Below, in pieces: positions 1 through 8,734 of a DNA stretch of 8,734 nt; positions within the stretch are counted from its first letter, which is position 1; every line of letters starts with the position of its first letter. Location of the stretch: the NCBI GenBank assembly GCA_013416795.1, contig RQSC01001053.1:37352-46085 (forward strand). Reading direction: 5' to 3'. The notes beneath the pieces were generated by a model. The model saw nothing but the letters and a program-made list of their open reading frames with translations. It searched no databases and was not told the DNA's origin. The stretch comes from Prasinococcaceae sp. CCMP 1430. Lineage: Eukaryota; Plantae; Prasinodermophyta. A program made the translations under genes and the position numbers.

Positions 1-18
1 GGAGGCGGCTATGTAACA
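1..18 (-). repeat. First 18 nt of the 3' LTR (rest lies outside the window)
   Basis: ggaggcggctatgtaaca is identical to 8553-8570. On the minus strand it begins TGTTACA directly after the PPT. Confidence 0.93.
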
Positions 19-31
19 TTCCTCCCCCTCC
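19..31 (-). other. Polypurine tract (plus-strand primer)
   Basis: Minus strand GGAGGGGGAGGAA: 13 purines directly abutting the LTR TG. Confidence 0.92.
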
Positions 32-70
32 ATAAGGGTCTCGTCCTTGGGACGTAAAAGCGGGGATACC

Positions 71-3000
71 TTAGATCAGGGGGTAACGACCCTCAATTGA
101 GCCTGACTTTCTCGTGACCACACGCGAAGTACCAGCGGTGTTTGCCCTCGCACCGGAGTCGGGCAGACTAGACACGGCCCGCTGGATGGGTTGAGAACCC
201 ACAGAGGCCCAATACCGACGCACCATATCTCGGGCATTTACCAGGTCGGCTTCTGGCTCCCAAGAATTATGTTCCGGACCATAGCCAGTCCACTGCACCA
301 AGTACTCGGTTTTTGGGCGAGCTCGAGAACCGACTTTGCGGTGACTAAGCACCTTCTCGACCTCGAATTCCTCGTCCCCAACAAGGAATCTAGTCAAAGG
401 TGGCGGTCCCGAAGCCTCACCATAAAACGGCTTCAACTGGGACACGTGGAACACGTCGTGGATTCGTGAACCCACAGGAAGTTCCAACTCGTAAGCCACT
501 TTACCGATAGGTCGCACTACCTTGTACGGACCCATCCATCTAGGCATCAACTTAACGCCTCGTTGTCCCACACGGGAGCGATAATTTCTGGTGTCCAACA
601 GTACCCGCTGTCCTGGTTGTAACACCAGGGGTCGCCGGTGTCGATCGGTGGCAGATTTCACACGACCCTGGATACGTTGGTACCGAAGTCGTGCCTCATC
701 ACGTGGCAACGACCTCTCCTCCTCACCCTCGGGGGCTGGCAAAGCCAGTGGTGCGTCTCCTCCCCGCACTGGTGAAGGGGTGGGTAGTCGCTCTAACGCA
801 GACTGACGATCCTCGGCAGCGCGCAAGTGAGCTCGAGCGTCATGAATGGCGGTCGAGTAGCGACTGACCCAACGGGTAGCGGCAGGCACACGACTCAACC
901 GTGTGGCACCAATCGCCAGATCCATTGGATTCCGGGGTTGGTGACTGTATAGCATCTCGAAGGGTGACAGACCCGTAGCTTGCACCCATGCGCTGTTGAT
1001 CGCAAACTCTGCCGTGTCTAAGTAGAGGTCCCAGTCATTGCGATCTGCATTTACAAAATGCCGCAACATGTCTTCAAGGACTCGATTCATGCGCTCGGTC
1101 TGCCCATCCGTCTGTGGATGAAAGGCGGTAGACATGGCTAGTTTCGTACCAGCCGTAGCGCACACTTCGCCCCAGAACGCACTGGTAAAGCGTGGGTCTC
1201 TGTCAGAGACAATCGAGCCAGGGAAACCGTGCAAGCGCACGATCTCATGCATGAAGACCTTAGCGAAGCTTATCGCGTCAATTGTTTTCGTCGTGGCGAC
1301 CAAGTGAACCATCTTGGTCAACCGATCCACGAAGACAATGATAGCATCATGCTTTAACTTGGTCACCGGCAGATCAGTGATCAAGTCCATGGATATATCT
1401 GTCCATGGCTTCTCTGGGATGGGAAGCGGCTGTAGCAACCCTGGCGGCCTTCGATTCGCGCTCTTATTGAACTGGCAGTCTGGGCACTGCCGTACGAACC
1501 GCTCGACATCCTTTGTCAGGCCTTCCCAGTGGAAGAATCTTTGAACGGCTTTCACCGTTCGGTTAATGCCAAGGTGTCCACTGTACGGAGTTGAATGCAG
1601 CTCCTCCAGAATCTGCTTCCGTAACTTGGTGACATCAGGAATCACCATGCGGTCATCCTTGAACCAAAGGCCGTCTCGGAAAGAGAACCCTTCCGTCTGC
1701 AACAAGTCGGCCTGCCCGAACTTCGGGTCTAGTGCATACCCTAGCCTGACACCCTGACGTAGCTGGAGGACATCAGGATCCGGGTTCATCGGATAGTGCA
1801 CGAAGTGGGAACCGCCCACCCCAGTTTTGCCAAGTCCCTCTGGTTCAGTCGGATCAGGGTTGGCCGACCCTTCACCTCCTGTCGCGCCTCCGCCCCTCAA
1901 GTAGAGGCCGGCCAGGGAGACAACACTCTGGCCAGGCTTCACCCGGTTACCCTCAACTGGGAACCGGCTCAGCGGATCAGCCACGTTCATCCGCCCTGGG
2001 AGGTACTCCCAACGGAAATTGAAGCTGTGGAGGAACTCAGACCAGCGAGCCTGGCGCCTCGACAAGCGCGGCTGGGTCGAGAAGAACACGTTGGGGTTAT
2101 GGTCCGTCACAACCGTGGTCGGACCAATATCGTTCTCCAAATAGCAACGCCAGATTCGGAAGGCATGCACCACAGCCAGGAGCTCCTTCTCGGACGTGCT
2201 ATAGTTCAGCTCAGCGGGCTGAAGCTTACGACTCTCGTAGGCAACGGGTTTGCCATCTTGTAAGAGCACTGCTCCTACGGCATAATCCGAAGCGTCGCTG
2301 ATCACCGTGAATGGCTTGTCCCAGTCAGGGAGAGCCAGCACTGGTGGCGAGATCAACAACCGTTTCAACTCTTGAAACGCGTGCTCCTCTCTGTCCGACC
2401 AGACCCAAGGTCGAGTCTTGGACGTGAGAGCCATAAGAGGAGAAGCGACTCCTGAAAACCCCTGAATAAACTTCCGAAACTGGTTGGCCAAACCGAGGAA
2501 GCTCTGAACGTCTCGCACGTTCTGAGGAGTCGGCCATTCGGAGACTGCCTGGACCTTGGCCGGGTCCACACGAACGCCTTCTCCATCAACCACATAGCCA
2601 AGATACTTCAATCGGCCGAGATTGAAGTGACACTTTTTCATCTTGGCGTACAGCTTGTGATCTCGCAATTTAGCGAGCACATAGCGTAAATGTCTTTCGT
2701 GCTCTTCCGGGGTTCGACTGTAAATCAGGATATCATCCAGATAAATCAGTACGAACTCGCCAATAGCGTCTCGGAAGACATCATTCATCAGCCGTTGAAA
2801 CGTCGAGGGGGCGTTGGTCAAGCCGAAGGGCATTACCATGAACTCGTACAACCCAAACGGAGTTCGGAATGCCGTTTTCGGGACGTCCTCCTCTGAAATA
2901 CGGATCTGATGATAACCTTGCGCCAAGTCGAGTGCTGAGAACACACGAGCTCCACGGAGCTTGTCCAACAGGTCATCTATCCGGGGAAGCGGATAGCGGT

Positions 3001-4420
3001 TCTTGACCGTGAGCTTATTCACTGCTCGTAGGTCCACACAGAACCGTAGTGACCCGTCCGCCTTTTTGGCTAGCAAGACCGGCGAGCCAAAGGGCGAAGC
3101 ACTCGGACGTACCCAACCTTTTTCAAGGTAGTACGCTAATTGACGCTTGATCTCAGCGAGCTCAGGAGGTGAATACCGGTACATCGGCCTGAAAGGTGGT
3201 ACCGCTCCTGGCTCTAGAGGAATCACGTGATTCACGTCCCGCCAAGGTGGCAAGCCCGTGGGATTATCTTCAGGGAACACGTCCTTGAAATCCCGAAGGA
3301 CGGCTTGTAGCCGCTCACTTGGCAATAAGTTAGCGTTGTCGGTCGGCTCTGAGCTAGTCGATTCGTCCACCTCAACTGTGCGTAAGAGGACGACTGCTAG
3401 CTCGGTGCCTCGCTTGACCGAACGCTTCAGCTGCATAGCTGACAAAAGTCGGGGCTCGTGGGCTGAACTTACAGCCGGCCTTACGACTATGGCTAGCGCA
3501 GAGTATGTCTTGCTCGAAGACACAAATGAAAGTCGAGATGCAGAGTAGTCGACAACCGCTTGGTGGCGGGTCAACCACGCATCCCCCAGGATCATATCGT
3601 AGCTGGGGTTGAGGGTTACCACGTGGAACCGAACCGTTCCTGAGTAACCACCCAATCGAACCTTCAATTGAGTTGTTCCACACACGGGAACGCTCGTAGT
3701 CCCATCGGCTAACGTAACCGTTGAAGTGTTTTTACTAGAGTATTTGATGCCCGCTCGGCTACAAAAAACCGAACTGAGAAAATTGTCAGTGGCTGCGGTA
3801 TCCACCACCGCCCGGCAATTCGAGCCGGCCACCGAGGCATCAAACTGCATTGTTACGTGTGAACCATGGTTCACAGCCGATACACTAGGACTAGGCGGAT
3901 CATAGAAAACATGGCACCTGACGGGTGAAGCCACATTTTCGATCTCACCAGTGGATCTAAGGCGCATCACTGGGGCCCCTTTGTCTATTACATGCACCAA
4001 CTGCAATTTAGACAACGATCCATGCAACTTGCGGTATGCGGGAACAAAAATCAACGCCGACGTACAATCGGGTTGTGCACGTTTCTCCACATTATACAAT
4101 TGCCACACACGACTTGCATTACACGGCATTGTGAGATTCAACCAGCAAGCATGGCCCGCAAGCGAGGTTTGCACCAACTTGGCGTCAAAACCATTTACTG
4201 TACCACCCAAGGGCATACGAGTGCCACACACATCGAGCCAACCATCAAGGGGCAATTCTACACGCTGCATAAGTTCACTAAACGAACTAGCATCTAGTTC
4301 AAGTGCAGCTACAGGTGTGCCTAGCCCCGTACAAAAACTCTTACTCGTCTCTAAGCCACTTATATTTCCAACAAGAGAAGCCCCCGTTGGCCCGTCACTA
4401 ACGGGGCTCTCTAGTTTTCC
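71..4420 (-). CDS. pol: Pol polyprotein (MTase-like domain, aspartic protease, RT, RNase H, integrase, chromodomain), probably made as a Gag-Pol -1 frameshift fusion
   Basis: Open frame with stop at 71-73. The ORF-track start at 4642 is a TTG, and the residues before ~4420 are off-frame gag sequence. Motifs DTAA/ILG, YLDD, DASD/EKELLA/TDH, HHCC, D-D35-E, GPY and a chromodomain are present. Confidence 0.96.
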   Translation of the reverse strand, partial: GKLESPVSDGPTGASLVGNISGLETSKSFCTGLGTPVAALELDASSFSELMQRVELPLDGWLDVCGTRMPLGGTVNGFDAKLVQTSLAGHACWLNLTMPCNASRVWQLYNVEKRAQPDCTSALIFVPAYRKLHGSLSKLQLVHVIDKGAPVMRLRSTGEIENVASPVRCHVFYDPPSPSVSAVNHGSHVTMQFDASVAGSNCRAVVDTAATDNFLSSVFCSRAGIKYSSKNTSTVTLADGTTSVPVCGTTQLKVRLGGYSGTVRFHVVTLNPSYDMILGDAWLTRHQAVVDYSASRLSFVSSSKTYSALAIVVRPAVSSAHEPRLLSAMQLKRSVKRGTELAVVLLRTVEVDESTSSEPTDNANLLPSERLQAVLRDFKDVFPEDNPTGLPPWRDVNHVIPLEPGAVPPFRPMYRYSPPELAEIKRQLAYYLEKGWVRPSASPFGSPVLLAKKADGSLRFCVDLRAVNKLTVKNRYPLPRIDDLLDKLRGARVFSALDLAQGYHQIRISEEDVPKTAFRTPFGLYEFMVMPFGLTNAPSTFQRLMNDVFRDAIGEFVLIYLDDILIYSRTPEEHERHLRYVLAKLRDHKLYAKMKKCHFNLGRLKYLGYVVDGEGVRVDPAKVQAVSEWPTPQNVRDVQSFLGLANQFRKFIQGFSGVASPLMALTSKTRPWVWSDREEHAFQELKRLLISPPVLALPDWDKPFTVISDASDYAVGAVLLQDGKPVAYESRKLQPAELNYSTSEKELLAVVHAFRIWRCYLENDIGPTTVVTDHNPNVFFSTQPRLSRRQARWSEFLHSFNFRWEYLPGRMNVADPLSRFPVEGNRVKPGQSVVSLAGLYLRGGGATGGEGSANPDPTEPEGLGKTGVGGSHFVHYPMNPDPDVLQLRQGVRLGYALDPKFGQADLLQTEGFSFRDGLWFKDDRMVIPDVTKLRKQILEELHSTPYSGHLGINRTVKAVQRFFHWEGLTKDVERFVRQCPDCQFNKSANRRPPGLLQPLPIPEKPWTDISMDLITDLPVTKLKHDAIIVFVDRLTKMVHLVATTKTIDAISFAKVFMHEIVRLHGFPGSIVSDRDPRFTSAFWGEVCATAGTKLAMSTAFHPQTDGQTERMNRVLEDMLRHFVNADRNDWDLYLDTAEFAINSAWVQATGLSPFEMLYSHQPRNPMDLAIGATRLSRVPAATRWVSRYSTAIHDARAHLRAAEDRQSALERLPTPSPVRGGDAPLALPAPEGEEERSLPRDEARLRYQRIQGRVKSATDRHRRPLVLQPGQRVLLDTRNYRSRVGQRGVKLMPRWMGPYKVVRPIGKVAYELELPVGSRIHDVFHVSQLKPFYGEASGPPPLTRFLVGDEEFEVEKVLSHRKVGSRARPKTEYLVQWTGYGPEHNSWEPEADLVNARDMVRRYWASVGSQPIQRAVSSLPDSGARANTAGTSRVVTRKSGSIEGRYPLI
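209..367 (-). other. Chromodomain at the Pol C-terminus
   Basis: FEVEKVLSHR...EYLVQWTGYGPEHNSWEPEADL...VRRYW matches the chromodomain pattern (Y/F-E-V-E-x-I, YLVKW.GY, WEP). Confidence 0.93.
500..1680 (-). other. Integrase domain (HHCC zinc finger, DDE core, GPY/F)
   Basis: H-x6-H...C-x2-C at 1475-1597. D at 1385-1387 (SMDLI), D at 1202-1204 (SDRD), E at 1094-1096 (QTERMNR), with D-35-E spacing. WMGPYKV at 524-532. Confidence 0.95.
1964..2311 (-). other. RNase H domain
   Basis: FTVISDASDYAVGAVLLQ, YSTSEKELLAVV, VVTDH and NVADPLSR motifs typical of Ty3/Gypsy RNase H. Confidence 0.94.
2588..3190 (-). other. Reverse transcriptase core
   Basis: GWVRPSASPFGSP, LRFCVDLR, YPLPRIDDL, LDLAQGYHQI, KTAFRTP, MPFGLTNAPSTFQ, catalytic YLDD at 2732-2743, KYLGYVV. 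Confidence 0.97.
3518..3856 (-). other. Retropepsin-type aspartic protease
   Basis: RAVVDTAATDNF (catalytic Asp at 3800-3802), VTLADG flap, and YDMILGDAWL C-terminal motif. Boundaries are approximate. Confidence 0.88.
3893..4303 (-). other. Extra domain upstream of the protease resembling a degenerate Dam-like N6-adenine DNA methyltransferase
   Basis: L-x-L-D-x3-F-x2-L, WLDVCG, LAGHACWLNLTM (position of the W-x-NPPF motif), Y-x3-K-x3-P-x2-TSA-x3-VP, and VFYDPP. Recognised from memory of retroelement MTase domains, not by a search. Confidence 0.65.
4374..4420 (-). promoter_or_regulatory. Predicted -1 programmed ribosomal frameshift signal
   Basis: Heptamer G_GAA_AAC at 4420-4414 in the gag frame, immediately before the gag TAG. 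A stem CCCCGTT (4406-4400) / AACGGGG (4388-4382) starts 7 nt downstream. Pol is in the -1 frame. Confidence 0.8.
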
Positions 4421-5787
4421 GACTGTCTTGCCGTAGCTTGTGCGCCACCACGGGCTCCACCACGAAAGCCACGGCCTCCCCGGCCACCACGTCGACGACC
4501 TTGGAAGCTCACTCCATTCGACTGCACCCGTGCGGCCGCCTGCTCGGCGTTGACTTGCCGGTTGGCGTGGTCGGGCTGGAGACACTCGTTTCCAGTGTGC
4601 CCCGGCTTTCCGCACTCGAAACACAAGCGGTGGGTGAAGCAAAGCTGCCGCAGGGTGTCTGACCGTGGCTTCTTAGCCGGGTGAGACTTGGTGTCAGAGC
4701 GGGTTGCCTCGACAGTACCGGGTCGCTTGGTGCGACCACGGTTCTTGCCGGGACGGAAAACACCCCCCGACTTGGGAGGTGTGGGCACATGCCCATCACC
4801 CACTCCGCCTCCTGCTGGCGGGCCCCGCTGACGAGTTGGGTCATTCCGCTTCAACGGAAGTAACTCGTCATCCAGCCGGGCCAACGCATCCACCAATTTG
4901 GCCAAGCTCGAGACTTGCTCTGGAGAGAGGAGCTCGAGGGTCCGCAGTGGAGCCCAAAGGGCTTGACGCTGCGATTGCACAGCCTTACGGATGCGCAACT
5001 TGAGGGAGCCCTCGGACTGTTTCTCCTCGGCCCGTGTGATGCGGTTACTTGCCTCAAGGAGCCGTTGCACCGCCGTGGCCAAGCGCTCGTCTGGCTTGAT
5101 GTGCCACCGGTCAATGGCGTCCATGGCACGGCGGTCCGGGTCACCCATCCCGTAAGTGGCAACTAGCCACGTCTCCAAGTCAGCGAGCTTCGCTGTACGG
5201 GGGGCACCGCGCTCTGCCTCCAAGGCATCACGACGGTTGGACCAAGCCGCGTTCACCACCTCGCTGAGGCAGCGTTCGGCTGCCAACAGCTGTGTGTGTT
5301 CGGAAGCTGCCACTCCCGGCTCATCCAAAACGCCTAACTGACGTTTGAAGGTACTTATCCACCGACGCACATCGTCCGTGGGTAAGCCCTTGAACATGGG
5401 CACTTTGTCCGTGAGCTTGTACAGCTCTGGAGCAAAGATGACCCGTGGATTGAGCGGGATGGGACCACGTGGTCCCACGGTAGTGGTCGCTTCAAGCGGC
5501 ACTGCTACCGGTGGCCCGGTCGACATGACCGGTGCAGCACGCTCGGGGTGGGTACCTCCAGCCGCTCCCCGAAAGGAGAGGAGGTCCGCCTGGCACTCAG
5601 CGAGCACCTGCTCGGCCTGAGCGATCCCGAGCCTACTCCGGATGTCCGTGATGTACTCACGGACCATGGACGGCAAGTCCTCATCCGGGATGTGAAGGAG
5701 ATCTTCATCGTCTTCCTCCATGGGTTGATCGGCCTCCCTGGGTGCGGGGTTGTCGGTCGGGGTGTCGGCCTGCACGTTGCACGTCAT
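4411..5787 (-). CDS. gag: Gag ORF (capsid-like region, CCHC zinc knuckle, RGG tail); 4411-5769 is probably exon 2 of a spliced gag
   Basis: 458-aa ORF upstream of pol. P-x-F-x-G...W capsid N-terminal motif (PMFKG...DVRRWI), zinc knuckle CFECGKPGHTGNEC (C-x2-C-x4-H-x4-C), and a C-terminal RGG tract. Confidence 0.92.
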   Translation of the reverse strand: MTCNVQADTPTDNPAPREADQPMEEDDEDLLHIPDEDLPSMVREYITDIRSRLGIAQAEQVLAECQADLLSFRGAAGGTHPERAAPVMSTGPPVAVPLEATTTVGPRGPIPLNPRVIFAPELYKLTDKVPMFKGLPTDDVRRWISTFKRQLGVLDEPGVAASEHTQLLAAERCLSEVVNAAWSNRRDALEAERGAPRTAKLADLETWLVATYGMGDPDRRAMDAIDRWHIKPDERLATAVQRLLEASNRITRAEEKQSEGSLKLRIRKAVQSQRQALWAPLRTLELLSPEQVSSLAKLVDALARLDDELLPLKRNDPTRQRGPPAGGGVGDGHVPTPPKSGGVFRPGKNRGRTKRPGTVEATRSDTKSHPAKKPRSDTLRQLCFTHRLCFECGKPGHTGNECLQPDHANRQVNAEQAAARVQSNGVSFQGRRRGGRGGRGFRGGARGGAQATARQSEN

Positions 5788-5846
5788 TCATGAGTGCCCG
5801 TGCCAAGAAGGCATTAGAATACAGTGGAAAACATGATGGTTGGTCA

Positions 5847-5938
5847 AGCAGCCGGTCAGCCTGTGAGCCGGTCGGCCTGTCAGCCGGTCAGCCTATCACC
5901 CTGTCAGCCGGTCAGCCTGTCTGCCCGACAGGCTGACC
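5847..5938. repeat. Array of ~10 degenerate 8-mers (GTCAGCCG/GTCAGCCT) ending in a 12-bp inverted copy
   Basis: In-register units from 5847: agcagccg, gtcagcct, gtgagccg, gtcggcct, gtcagccg, gtcagcct, atcaccct, gtcagccg, gtcagcct, gtctgccc, then gacaggctgacc. Confidence 0.9.
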
Positions 5939-5965
5939 ATAGGCCAGCAAGAAAACATGCATAAC

Positions 5966-5993
5966 TTTCTCAATTCAACTCCGAATTGAGAAA
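5966..5993. repeat. Perfect 11-bp inverted repeat with a 6-nt loop
   Basis: tttctcaattc (5966-5976), aactcc, gaattgagaaa (5983-5993). Confidence 0.9.
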
Positions 5994-6885
5994 TTCAAAG
6001 TGCGTTAGAAACGGCCTGGACCTGGGCTATCTGTTGCACTAGACAGCGGCGTCTGATTCCAAGCACAGTGGTACCAAAACAGGCCTGATTGAACCAGTGT
6101 CACAGAACAGCACATGGCTGCCACAACGAGCAACCCGAGACAAAACAGCGAGTCTCACGCACAGCTCAAAGGCCCAAAACGTACGTGACTCAGAGAAAAG
6201 GTAACACAGCAAGGGCTTTACCGTGTGATCAAACGGGAGCTCACGAAAATAATGGAATACGAAGATATTAGACAAGACGTGCTTGAGAGTACACGGGTAA
6301 AAAGTGGGTCCACAGACCAGCCCACACACCCGGTATGATACAAAACGGCGGCGCTTGCCATTCTCAACTCCGTCATCCAAACAACGTGGGACCAAATTCA
6401 AATAAAAGCCTTGGAATGACTTAAGGAAAGGCCCAAAAGGTTCCCTCAGAAACATCACCAAAATGCGGTGAGCTCCATGCATCTAAGCAAGGGTAACCGG
6501 ATCAAAAAATTGGGTATCAGGAAAACCCGAACACCCAGCAAGCTTTAACGACGTCCAGCCGCCAGGAAAGAGCAGAAAATTGAGATCCGTTTGAAGCTAC
6601 TAGAAGCTTCATAAATACCCTCAGGAACACAGCAATATCTCCAAGAAATTACTCCAGAGCGACGAGCACAACTGTCCGTTCAAACTCAGATCTCAGAGAT
6701 TGCAAAAAACAGTCGCAGCCATATAACCCGAAACTCGACCAAACTTCCGGGCCAATTCTATCAAAGGTAGAGGCCACCCGAGAAGCTATCAAGACGTGGT
6801 CAAGATGAGCAATGTCCAAGGTAAACAAATACCAAAGACAAGGCTGAGAATCATTCGGATGGGTCCGGTAGCACGGCTGTCTCAA

Positions 6886-6954
6886 ATCAGCCTGTCAGCC
6901 TGTCACCCTGTTTGACAGGCTGACAGACAGGACTGACAGACAGGCCTGACAGGC
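6886..6954. repeat. Second GTCAGCCT/TGACAG cluster with forward then inverted copies; 14-bp hairpin
   Basis: atcagcct gtcagcct gtcaccct, then tgacaggctgacag acaggactgacag acaggcctgacaggc. ctgtcagcctgtca (6892-6905) is the reverse complement of 6913-6926. Confidence 0.9.
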
Positions 6955-7281
6955 AGCAACTTCAAACTCATGCTGCTGCTAAACATCTCATACCGACACA
7001 TGGTTATGAAAAGCAGAGAGTGGGCTTTCCCACTAGCCAACCCAAAAGGAATTCCATCCGACCAATTCAACGCCATGGGTATAAACGTTCACAGGGGTCA
7101 ATCGGGTAGAACAAGATTGGCCGAAAACACCCCACAAAATGGCGCAACGTGCTGAGTGAGCACAAAGAAAGAGAAATGGATCCCAAACGGGGAACTTCCC
7201 ATTCAGGAACCCAGCTATCCTTGGCTAAAATCTTGGGACCTGGATCGGTCCATACCGCACACACCAAGCCAATATACACAC

Positions 7282-7537
7282 GGCTAGTTTCTTGTAAAAC
7301 AGCCCTGTAAAACTGTAACTGGCAAGCTGGTTTGTACCAGCAGAGCGGCCATCAATACTCAGCAACCCCTGCATCATTCAAGGTGCAAATACAGCATGTT
7401 CCAGCCACCAGGCTTTACTCTTGGATGGGACAAACAGCAGTGTAAAACTCTGCCTATTCATGATGGGACCCCGGTCTCAAACTGGCCGGGTGTTCCAAGC
7501 ACTGAAACCTGAGCACCAGTTTTACAAGCAACTAGGC
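7282..7537. repeat. 256-nt segment bounded by a 19-bp imperfect inverted repeat
   Basis: ggctagtttcttgtaaaac (7282-7300) versus the reverse complement of 7519-7537, gcctagttgcttgtaaaac: 17/19 identical. Confidence 0.75.
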
Positions 7538-7839
7538 TGAAACACTTAATGGAACATAGCTCACACGAAACCGCACCAAAATAAGATTGGTTTGGCTCTA
7601 ACGAGGGGCCTTTACATCAGCTTTCAAACAAGCTTAAGGTTCCCTGGAGCAAACACACACCACGGCAACACGGCCTGCTGCTGTCCGAACAAATTTTCTG
7701 AGATTTTGCAACTGTAAAATTGGCTGTAACTCAGAAATTTGGGCCACTTTGCCCGCATGGTTTGAACAGCAAACAAGACAGCGAACGGAAAGAGGGAAGA
7801 GAAGGGAGAGAGAGTATGGCACAGCGCCATCTTTCTTAC

Positions 7840-8070
7840 CCCAGCCGGGTCGTTCCCGGCTGGCTGCTCCTCGGGTTCTTCATGCGGCTCCCGGGAAGCT
7901 CCAGCCCGAGCTGGGTCATCTTGGTGCTCCTCCCCCGTTGCCGGTGGGTTCGTCTCCATGGGTGACGCCCGTGAGTCCGTCTCCATGGGTGTTACCCGTG
8001 AGGTTGAAGGTGCAGCTCCCCCCGTCGCCTTGGCTGCCACCCCAACTCCAGCCCGTCGTCCACCCGCCAT
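7840..8070 (-). CDS. gag: Predicted gag exon 1: 77-aa low-complexity (A/G/P/E-rich) N-terminus
   Basis: The ATG at 8070 (ccATGGcg) is the first sense-strand ATG after the PBS. The frame stays open to the GTAAG donor, and the composition matches the start of exon 2 (ADTPTDNPAPREADQPMEEDDED). Confidence 0.7.
7951..8004. repeat. Two-copy 27-nt tandem duplication inside predicted exon 1
   Basis: cgtctccatgggtgacgcccgtgagtc / cgtctccatgggtgttacccgtgaggt (22/27 identical), encoding SRVTPMETD / SRASPMETN. Confidence 0.85.
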
Positions 8071-8236
8071 GGAAACTCGAACAAAATGGGGCTGGAGGTA
8101 GAGATGGTTCCCAGGAAGATGGGGACGGTGTTGCTGGTCTTCTTGGGACTTCAAACTCTGTCACGGCCTCAAAGACAGCCGGACAGCCCAAAGAACTCTG
8201 ATTTCACAAGAATGGAAGGCCCTCCCCGGACCTTGC

Positions 8237-8248
8237 GCTCCGATACCA
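8237..8248 (-). other. Primer binding site complementary to the 3' end of initiator tRNA-Met (plant/green-algal type)
   Basis: Minus strand TGGTATCGGAGC, 2 nt after the LTR CA. It matches the canonical TGGTATCAGAGC at 11/12, the difference allowing a G-U pair. Confidence 0.92.
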
Positions 8249-8250
8249 AA

Positions 8251-8570
8251 TGTTAGAAGGGGGACCGGGAGCCCAAGGAACCTCCTTCTTGGACCCGGCC
8301 CGTCCTCGAATACTATCACACAATACACAAGACAAGAGTGGGCATGGAGGCCACCACGGCCTCACGCTGACTCCCCCATGCCCGGGGTTGTTTCTGGATT
8401 TCCAAGTCCCCCCTCGATTGGTCCTCGAGTGGGCCTTATCCAGTCGATGCCTCTAGGTACTCCCGTATAGCTATACGTCGACCTAGCCCCACCTAGGGAG
8501 TAGACATCTAGGAGGGATCCACGGGTGTGAGCGGCCCGTGGTCCTCCTTTTGGGAGGCGGCTATGTAACA
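8251..8570 (-). repeat. Complete 320-bp LTR: 5' LTR of this copy and 3' LTR of the adjacent copy
   Basis: TGTTA...TAACA terminal inverted repeats. PBS abuts one side and PPT the other. The last 18 nt match window positions 1-18. Confidence 0.93.
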
Positions 8571-8583
8571 TTCCTCCCCCTCC
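8571..8583 (-). other. Polypurine tract of the adjacent copy
   Basis: GGAGGGGGAGGAA on the minus strand, identical to 19-31. Confidence 0.92.
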
Positions 8584-8627
8584 ATAAGGGTCTCGTCCTC
8601 GAGACGTAAGAATGGGGATACCCCAAC

Positions 8628-8734
8628 TCAGGGTGTAACGACCCTCAATTGAGCCTGACTTCTCGTGACCACACGCGAAGTACCAGCGGTGTTTGCCCTC
8701 GCACCGGAGTCGGACAGACTAGACACGGCCCGCT
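8628..8734 (-). CDS. pol: Partial Pol C-terminus of the adjacent copy (...RAVSSLSDSGARANTAGTSRVVTRSQAQLRVVTP*)
   Basis: Homologous to 71-183. A 1-nt indel changes the last residues and the frame stops at TGA (8630-8628). Frame assumed from copy 1. Confidence 0.7.
   Translation of the reverse strand, partial: RAVSSLSDSGARANTAGTSRVVTRSQAQLRVVTP

Follow-up and report, generated by a model that had tools for sequence, protein, structure and literature searches.

How does a retrotransposon make its Gag and its Pol when some two kilobases of non-coding sequence lie within gag, when pol lies in another frame than gag, and when Pol begins with a domain that precedes the protease? This question is raised by 8,734 nucleotides of Prasinococcaceae sp. 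CCMP 1430 (contig RQSC01001053.1, positions 37,352 to 46,085), hereafter the window, whose long open reading frames (ORFs) of interest are all on the minus strand. They belong to an intact-looking long terminal repeat (LTR) retrotransposon of the Ty3/gypsy type and of the chromovirus kind. Our best explanation combines the order LTR (320 nt), primer-binding site, gag, pol, polypurine tract and start of the next LTR, a frameshift between gag and pol, a Pol domain derived from a DNA adenine methyltransferase (DAM), and a gag that would be completed by splicing. Taken as a whole we consider it probable, its parts being of unequal strength.

The element and its relatives

The element is placed among the chromoviruses because Pfam finds in Pol, in this order, a protease, a reverse transcriptase, an RNase H and an integrase, with a chromodomain C-terminal to the integrase (Table 1); the RVT_1 match covers pol residues 526-684 and RNase H residues 748-874. 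The Y-x-D-D of the reverse transcriptase and the zinc-finger pattern of the integrase are present, and neither gag nor pol contains an internal stop, the programmed frameshift being the only interruption. The chromodomain would steer integration to marked chromatin, as in other chromoviruses.

Relatives were collected by a protein search with pol, which gave 2187 matches at E<=1e-10. Those near full length are 40-47% identical, and nearly all the full-length best matches listed carry a chromodomain. All relatives are thus distant (at most 47% pol identity), the closest being the element L006 (47%). No close family member appeared in the other searches, which weighs against our explanation: the gag protein search gave no relative at E<=1e-3, the look-up of exact products no match and the viral contigs no related locus, while the scan of metagenome contigs yielded three distant pieces only (L001-L003). 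The original prediction had suggested testing whether splice donor, splice acceptor, slippery site and methyltransferase-like domain are conserved together in the family. With distant relatives only to compare, the slippery heptamer and the domain are found again, but the intron is not.

Table 1. Features of the element in the window (RT, reverse transcriptase; AF2, AlphaFold2).
Feature	Positions	Strand	Basis
3' LTR, first 18 nt, cut by the window end	1..18	-	comparison of ends
Polypurine tract GGAGGGGGAGGAA	19..31	-	purine tracts ending in GGAGGAA occupy this place in L004 and L005
pol ORF, no internal stop; 1523 codons open, ~1448 used after the shift	71..4642	-	ORF listing, Pfam
Chromodomain PF00385, 54.5 bits; pol residues 1426-1479	206..367	-	Pfam
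Integrase (H2C2 zinc finger, rve core, SH3); pol residues 1006-1406	425..1627	-	Pfam
RT and RNase H	2021..3067	-	Pfam: RVT_1 130 bits, RT_RNaseH 105 bits
Aspartic protease; pol residues 263-380	3503..3856	-	Pfam
Putative Dam-derived N-terminal Pol domain, 188 aa; homologous core ~3866-4183	3848..4411	-	relatives' profiles, AF2 fold
Stem-loop 3' of the heptamer, candidate frameshift stimulator	4374..4412	-	predicted hairpin; also in relatives
Candidate slippery heptamer for the -1 shift, GGAAAAC, immediately ahead of the gag stop	4414..4420	-	identical sequence and position in L006
Main gag ORF, 458 codons (own ATG) or 452 (candidate acceptor)	4411..5787	-	ORF, Pfam
gag region, first AUG after the primer-binding site to gag stop; two coding segments, ~2.07 kb non-coding between	4411..8070	-	
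U-rich non-coding stretch, 2070 nt, candidate intron GT...CAG, phase 0/0	5770..7839	-	composition, stops, signals
Candidate gag exon 1, 77 codons, acidic, Pro-rich, ends GG/GTAAGA	7840..8070	-	coding score, donor
Primer-binding site TGGTATCGGAGC	8237..8248	-	2 nt past the LTR; 11 of 12 bases match the site of L004
Only complete LTR, 320 nt, ends TGTTA...TAACA	8251..8570	-	between polypurine tract and primer-binding site
Internal 3' end of the upstream copy (pol C-terminus and polypurine tract)	8571..8734	-	~93% identical to 19-183

A probable methyltransferase-derived domain at the N-terminus of Pol

The region of about 110-190 aa that precedes the protease appears, from profile comparisons and from a structure model, to descend from a prokaryote-type DNA adenine methyltransferase of the PF05869 (Dam) kind. 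Its ancestry is demonstrable only by way of the relatives' profiles and of the fold. PF05869 was already annotated in 7 of the best 120 of the 2187 pol relatives, and a rescan located it just upstream of the protease in seven relatives (25.5-31.3 bits, profile positions ~19-88 of 169). An eighth relative, P0082, scored 22.9 bits, and four of the eight reach the cut-off of 28.1 bits. A profile built from the pre-protease segments of 77 relatives matches the window domain with 54.6 bits; another, built from the eight PF05869-positive segments alone, gives 37.1 bits (E 1.6e-11) and also matches 61 of 124 fetched relative proteins. Besides, two relatives match PHROG families described as DNA methyltransferase.

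The structure points to the same family. The AlphaFold2 model of the domain, made from a 40-row alignment, has a predicted local distance difference test score (pLDDT) of 75.7, near 90 in the core, and a predicted template-modelling score (pTM) of 0.69. Foldseek brings it close to phage DNA N-6-adenine methyltransferases in BFVD (E 7e-5 to 1e-3, probability 1.00) and, in the PDB, to PCIF1/CAPAM first (6irv, E 0.017, probability 0.99, template-modelling score 0.50), then to M.BceJIV and CcrM (E up to ~0.06). PCIF1/CAPAM and the phage enzymes are its best structural matches, but they share 9-15% identity with it, their fold is covered partly and the window domain is devoid of their catalytic motif. 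The original prediction, which put a Dam-like domain at one end of Pol and a chromodomain at the other, is thus supported at both ends, by the eight-segment profile and the fold for the former and by PF00385 for the latter.

Several observations nevertheless speak against this descent. Searched directly, the domain has no match in Pfam (E<=10), in the PDB sequences (phmmer) or in PHROGs, and it stays below the gathering score of PF05869, the family of the active enzymes. A word-indexed search found no match to it. Scanned in full with HMMER, 1.84 billion representatives yielded four weak matches (E 3e-5 to 9e-4): two pol fragments with the same pre-protease region, a 173-aa protein weakly matching PF05869 and an unrelated protein. 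The fold matches are also modest, with template-modelling scores of ~0.5.

Could the region be just a fast-evolving transframe spacer, the Dam likeness of its relatives being marginal noise? Their PF05869 scores of 22.9-31.3 bits, which straddle the cut-off over less than the whole profile, and the lack of any direct match in the window would fit this idea, but we hold it for very improbable: the PHROG matches in two relatives and the adenine-methyltransferase folds found in two libraries agree independently, the W-L-N-P-P-F motif of the relatives aligns in register, and DAM domains are reported in chromovirus-like LTR elements by a published survey discussed below.

The domain was absent from all the pols retrieved from named organisms (Haematococcus, Closterium, Nannochloris, angiosperms, a frog); the relatives bearing it are metagenome contigs.

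Loss of the catalytic motif

A preprint of May 2026 (Fernandez-Moreno et al., bioRxiv 10.64898/2026.05.21.726589) describes LTR elements with a DAM domain (DAM-LTRs), among them a DAM-chromovirus-like clade of Chlorophyta with chromodomains. Such elements came to be reported only in 2026. In the preprint the domain of the LTR elements is inferred to have been captured from DIRS-like elements, and DAM-LTRs are proposed to write N6-methyladenine (6mA) on their own copies, exploiting the active chromatin of the host (10.64898/2026.05.21.726589). Its conserved pocket, Asn-Pro-Pro followed by an aromatic residue, is called there well conserved, and even DAM domains with an intact motif brought no gain of 6mA in Escherichia coli (10.64898/2026.05.21.726589).

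The window departs from this pocket. In the aligned columns, W-[LIM]-N-[PA]-P-[FY] is found in the PF05869-positive relatives and W-L-N-L-T-M in the window. The Dam-like domain, which the original prediction called dead, is therefore without its catalytic motif, and because Asn-Pro-Pro-aromatic became N-L-T-M we infer that it is catalytically dead. This state is not a peculiarity of the window: among the 61 relatives recognised by the eight-segment profile, nine have [DNS]PP-aromatic, nine [DNS]AP-aromatic and 43 neither. Counted over the 77 pre-protease segments, the motif columns keep N in 20, the first P in 25, the second P in 37 and F in 12 (P in 14), to be compared with the better-kept columns Y106 (56), K110 (55), P114 (59), S118 (57), P124 (56), G145 (53) and P173 (52). 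As judged from these alignments, the loss of the catalytic motif while the fold is retained is the rule in this clade, which suggests a non-catalytic role. The domain would then be kept as the first product of Pol, in front of the protease, and might serve there as spacer, as regulator or as a binder of DNA or of a cofactor.

The original prediction had regarded the whole set of features as undescribed. This is now partly outdated, since the preprint covers the association of DAM and chromodomain. That association is already known; the motif-less state of the majority and the possible intron of gag are variants of it. The Chlorophyta clade and the window share the Ty3/gypsy chromovirus layout with a PF05869-like domain and a chromodomain in Pol; they differ by the pocket, which the preprint reports as well conserved and which is N-L-T-M in the window and missing in 43 of the 61 related domains. 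A second difference is that the window domain lies below Pfam detection, its homology coming from profiles (54.6 and 37.1 bits) and fold. The accessible part of the preprint mentions for this clade no frameshift, no intron and no position of the domain. As regards the elements of the DIRS type with a Dam-like methyltransferase, they possess the same domain family, but with a tyrosine recombinase and no integrase, chromodomain or LTRs of this sort, whereas the window has a DDE integrase, an LTR, a primer-binding site and a polypurine tract.

The window and its 61 domain-bearing relatives reveal a chromovirus clade in which the domain persists in most members without its catalytic motif. This bears directly on the 6mA proposal: either the domain is retained for something other than methylation, or surveys based on Pfam detect just an enzyme-like minority. 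The motif called well conserved in the preprint may itself reflect a detection based on Pfam.

A well-supported -1 frameshift at the end of gag

That a frameshift links gag to pol is standard. In the window the pol ORF overlaps the end of the gag ORF and lies in the -1 frame relative to it, as it does in L004-L008. A -1 ribosomal frameshift on GGAAAAC at the end of gag, which would make Gag-Pol, is well supported by the comparison of these sequences. In L006, which has the same heptamer at the same place, the pol frame is open just 13 nt before the gag stop, so that the shift must occur at the heptamer there. L007 has AAAAAAC-TAG at this place, L005 CAAAA-TAG and L004 CAAAA-TAA. The window and L004-L008 each have a predicted hairpin whose start lies no more than 5 nt from the gag stop (4-5 nt in L004, L005, L006 and the window); it is a likely stimulator of the slip. 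The -1 frameshift of the original prediction thus has comparative support, the heptamer being identical in L006 and the frame and hairpins recurring in L004-L008.

Some features fit such a shift less well. Taken sequence by sequence the hairpins have z-scores of -1.0 to -3.5 only, and that of the window is weak (-1.3). GGAAAAC is near-canonical without strictly obeying X XXY YYZ. In L009 and L010 pol follows in frame behind a TAG stop, with no frameshift, so that the clade uses two recoding layouts; these in-frame TAG sites are in the regions L009:3995 and L010:2174. Several traits are shared with retroviral -1 frameshifting: gag ends on an A-rich heptamer, a short spacer separates it from a stem-loop, and pol continues in the -1 frame. 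What differs is the first triplet of the window heptamer, which is not a homopolymer, and the in-frame stop of the sister elements L009 and L010. The re-pairing in the P site on GGAAAAC would need one G-U pair. For most Gypsy elements +1 shifts are the rule (PMC3735527).

A candidate intron in gag

The first AUG after the primer-binding site opens at 8070 an ORF of 148 codons, as the original prediction had said and the ORF listing confirms; the 180 nt from the LTR to this point contain no ATG. The coding score of the first 77 codons of this ORF is 0.176, the two other frames giving -0.16 and -0.31; gag itself behaves alike (0.228, with -0.18 and -0.34). These codons also exceed the 95th percentile of windows taken in the non-coding stretch (0.111). 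The next 71 codons score 0.097. Exactly after these 77 codons comes GTAAGA, the sole GTAAG or GTGAG among the 23 GT of the ORF. From the candidate exon 1 to the stretch and on to the main gag ORF, the U content goes from 9.5% to 32.3% and then to 17.0%, and the GC content from 68% to 49% and then to 63%; the stretch holds 27-30 stops in each frame. At its other edge the gag frame opens 18 nt before a CAG/G acceptor. The GT and AG boundaries, 2070 nt apart and both in phase 0, would restore one reading frame.

That this stretch is spliced out as a phase-0 GT-AG intron to give the mRNA for Gag and Gag-Pol is plausible, and in our judgment only just short of an even chance. Gag would start at the first AUG after the primer-binding site, at 180 nt; the spliced mRNA would yield Gag and Gag-Pol, and the unspliced RNA would serve as the copying template. 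Splicing is a proposal: no relative shares the stretch, and the searches brought neither a closer family member nor a transcript.

Several points speak against splicing. All relatives examined, ten that were fetched or listed, have a continuous gag (with lengths of 377, 452, ~382, 761, 834 and ~1184 aa), which makes the stretch specific to this lineage and possibly an insertion. At the acceptor the pyrimidine tract is poor (7 of 18), and other pairs could be drawn from 23 GT and 13 AG candidates. A Gag of 77 + 452 aa and a two-RNA life cycle, as originally proposed, fit the splice signals, phase and composition, but the relatives, with their continuous gag, do not share the stretch. Given that all relatives are distant, a lineage-specific intron is compatible with their continuous gag.

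The most serious alternative is that a recent insertion or rearrangement split gag, the copy being non-functional and the GT and AG at the edges chance picks among the many candidates. The stretch occurs in no relative, and the unit of the nearest one, L006, measures 5741 nt against 8552 in the window. The weakness of the acceptor goes in the same direction, and an obligate intron in gag would presumably be hard to keep, as the spliced RNA would also carry the primer-binding site and the polypurine tract. Moreover one residue of the protease catalytic triplet is non-canonical (the usual residue is found in 32 of 39 aligned relatives, that of the window in four), and for this reason the copy may be inactive, which also counts against our overall explanation. 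Against an insertion, the stretch lacks the hallmarks of a transposon: it has neither terminal inverted repeats nor long direct ones, none of its ORFs matches a family, and there is no poly-A end. The composition flips exactly at GTAAG; the two edges are phase 0, and gag and pol stay open over about 1900 codons. We regard an insertion as rather unlikely.

Another possibility is that gag starts unspliced at its internal ATG (5787), by means of an internal promoter in the stretch or of internal ribosome entry, the 148-codon ORF further upstream then yielding a small product of its own or acting as a regulatory upstream ORF. The long gag ORF does have its own ATG directly after a stop, and its 458 aa compare with the gag of relatives (377-452 aa in L004 and L005). 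But 37 ATGs lie between the LTR and 5787, so that ribosomes scanning the unspliced RNA would not reach the internal one; gag starts in relatives from ~100 nt (L005) to ~840 nt (L004) past the LTR, a range in which the first AUG of the window sits (180 nt); and the coding score drops from the first 77 codons to the following 71. Such an internal start seems to us improbable, clearly more so than an insertion.

Three other views of the stretch were rejected. A nested transposon should not be invoked, there being no terminal repeats and no coding remnants; the ORFs of the stretch have no Pfam match. An origin in a decayed long gag is not supported either: the gags of relatives, giant ones included, matched nothing in the stretch by tblastn. 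Finally, the structured 2-kb intron of the original prediction finds no support: the mean z-score in sliding windows is -1.21 in the stretch, weaker than in gag (-1.67) and pol (-1.34), and Rfam, searched on both strands, gives only two matches, of chance level.

Splicing is documented for the LTR retrotransposons copia, BARE1, Ogre and CRR, in which it decides which proteins are made while unspliced RNA is kept for replication (PMC3735527). The candidate intron resembles that of BARE1 in being rich in U and flanked by GC-rich exons (PMC3735527). In these four elements, however, splicing has been shown experimentally, and it either takes place between ORFs or leaves a Gag-only RNA from which pol is removed; the candidate intron of the window would instead interrupt the N-terminal part of gag, and both Gag and Gag-Pol would depend on splicing.

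If the gag intron is true, an obligatory splicing would separate the translation of a retroelement from its replication, which is a long-standing question about LTR elements. The joint reading goes further: throughout a large clade of environmental eukaryotes the captured DAM domain would have become the first product of Pol, conserved but non-catalytic, and gag would here be spliced by obligation. We consider this conjunction doubtful. Were it true, the unspliced RNA would be a dedicated template for replication, yielding only the 148-aa product.

Other features of the gag region

The main gag ORF has a CCHC zinc knuckle as sole Pfam feature, with a weak likeness to the gag of relatives around it. 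The knuckle is followed, up to the slippery site (4414-4520, minus strand), by a tail rich in Arg and Gly (RGG-type). In the candidate exon 1 an in-frame 27-nt tandem repeat (7940-8002, minus strand; 2.3 copies, 83% matches) encodes a repeated unit of nine residues.

Two clusters of the 8-mer CAGCCTGT/CAGCCGGT, at 5849-5938 and 6887-6958, lie ~1 kb apart within the non-coding stretch; each contains a perfect local palindrome of 12-14 nt and they have the strongest RNA-fold z-scores of the stretch (~-4). Over the whole minus strand, nearly all 150-nt sliding windows fold better than their dinucleotide shuffles.

Among the relatives, L006-L008 have ~600-820 nt between the stop of pol and the start of gag. 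L010 and L009 have giant continuous Gags of ~1184 aa (7254-8774 plus 2-2176) and 834 aa (1493-3997), with long N-terminal extensions that match no family; their span resembles that of the gag region in the window (3.66 kb).

Ends of the element and arrangement of the copies

The terminal repeats of the window could be taken for LTRs, a reading that we reject. The 183-nt direct repeat (1-183 and 8553-8734, 93% identical) contains, on the minus strand, the last pol codons, the polypurine tract GGAGGGGGAGGAA and then the 18 nt of LTR beginning TGTTACATAG. In the upstream copy TGTTACATAG runs on over 320 nt to TAACA, and TGGTATCGGAGC stands two bases further. The single full LTR goes therefore from 8570 to 8251, and with 18 nt of the next one the window is slightly longer than one period (8552 nt).

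Both L004 and L005 have this layout: GGAGGAA, an LTR TGTAAC...GTTACA, one base and TGGTATCAGAGC in L004; GGAGGAA, TGTAGC...GCTACA, one base and TGG in L005. LTR ends of the TG...CA form, a primer-binding site and a polypurine tract are those of a chromovirus. tRNA genes were sought in the long contigs of relatives as a test of the primer-binding site, and none was found in them.

The window consists of one unit plus 183 nt of overlap, in a tandem or permuted arrangement that starts inside the 3' end of another copy, and has no flanks. A like permutation exists in independent metagenome contigs of relatives: the ends of L006 are redundant over 168 nt, and in L010 gag runs on from one end of the contig to the other. 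Where pol 3' ends overlap in the window (1-183 and 8553-8734), ~7% of positions differ, which implies two different copies or a mixed assembly.

Lastly, an ORF of 570 aa lies upstream of the related element L005 (L005:1271-2983), on a contig that is presumably eukaryotic, and has a weak Pfam match to the Cas12f1-like TNB domain of the TnpB/Fanzor type.

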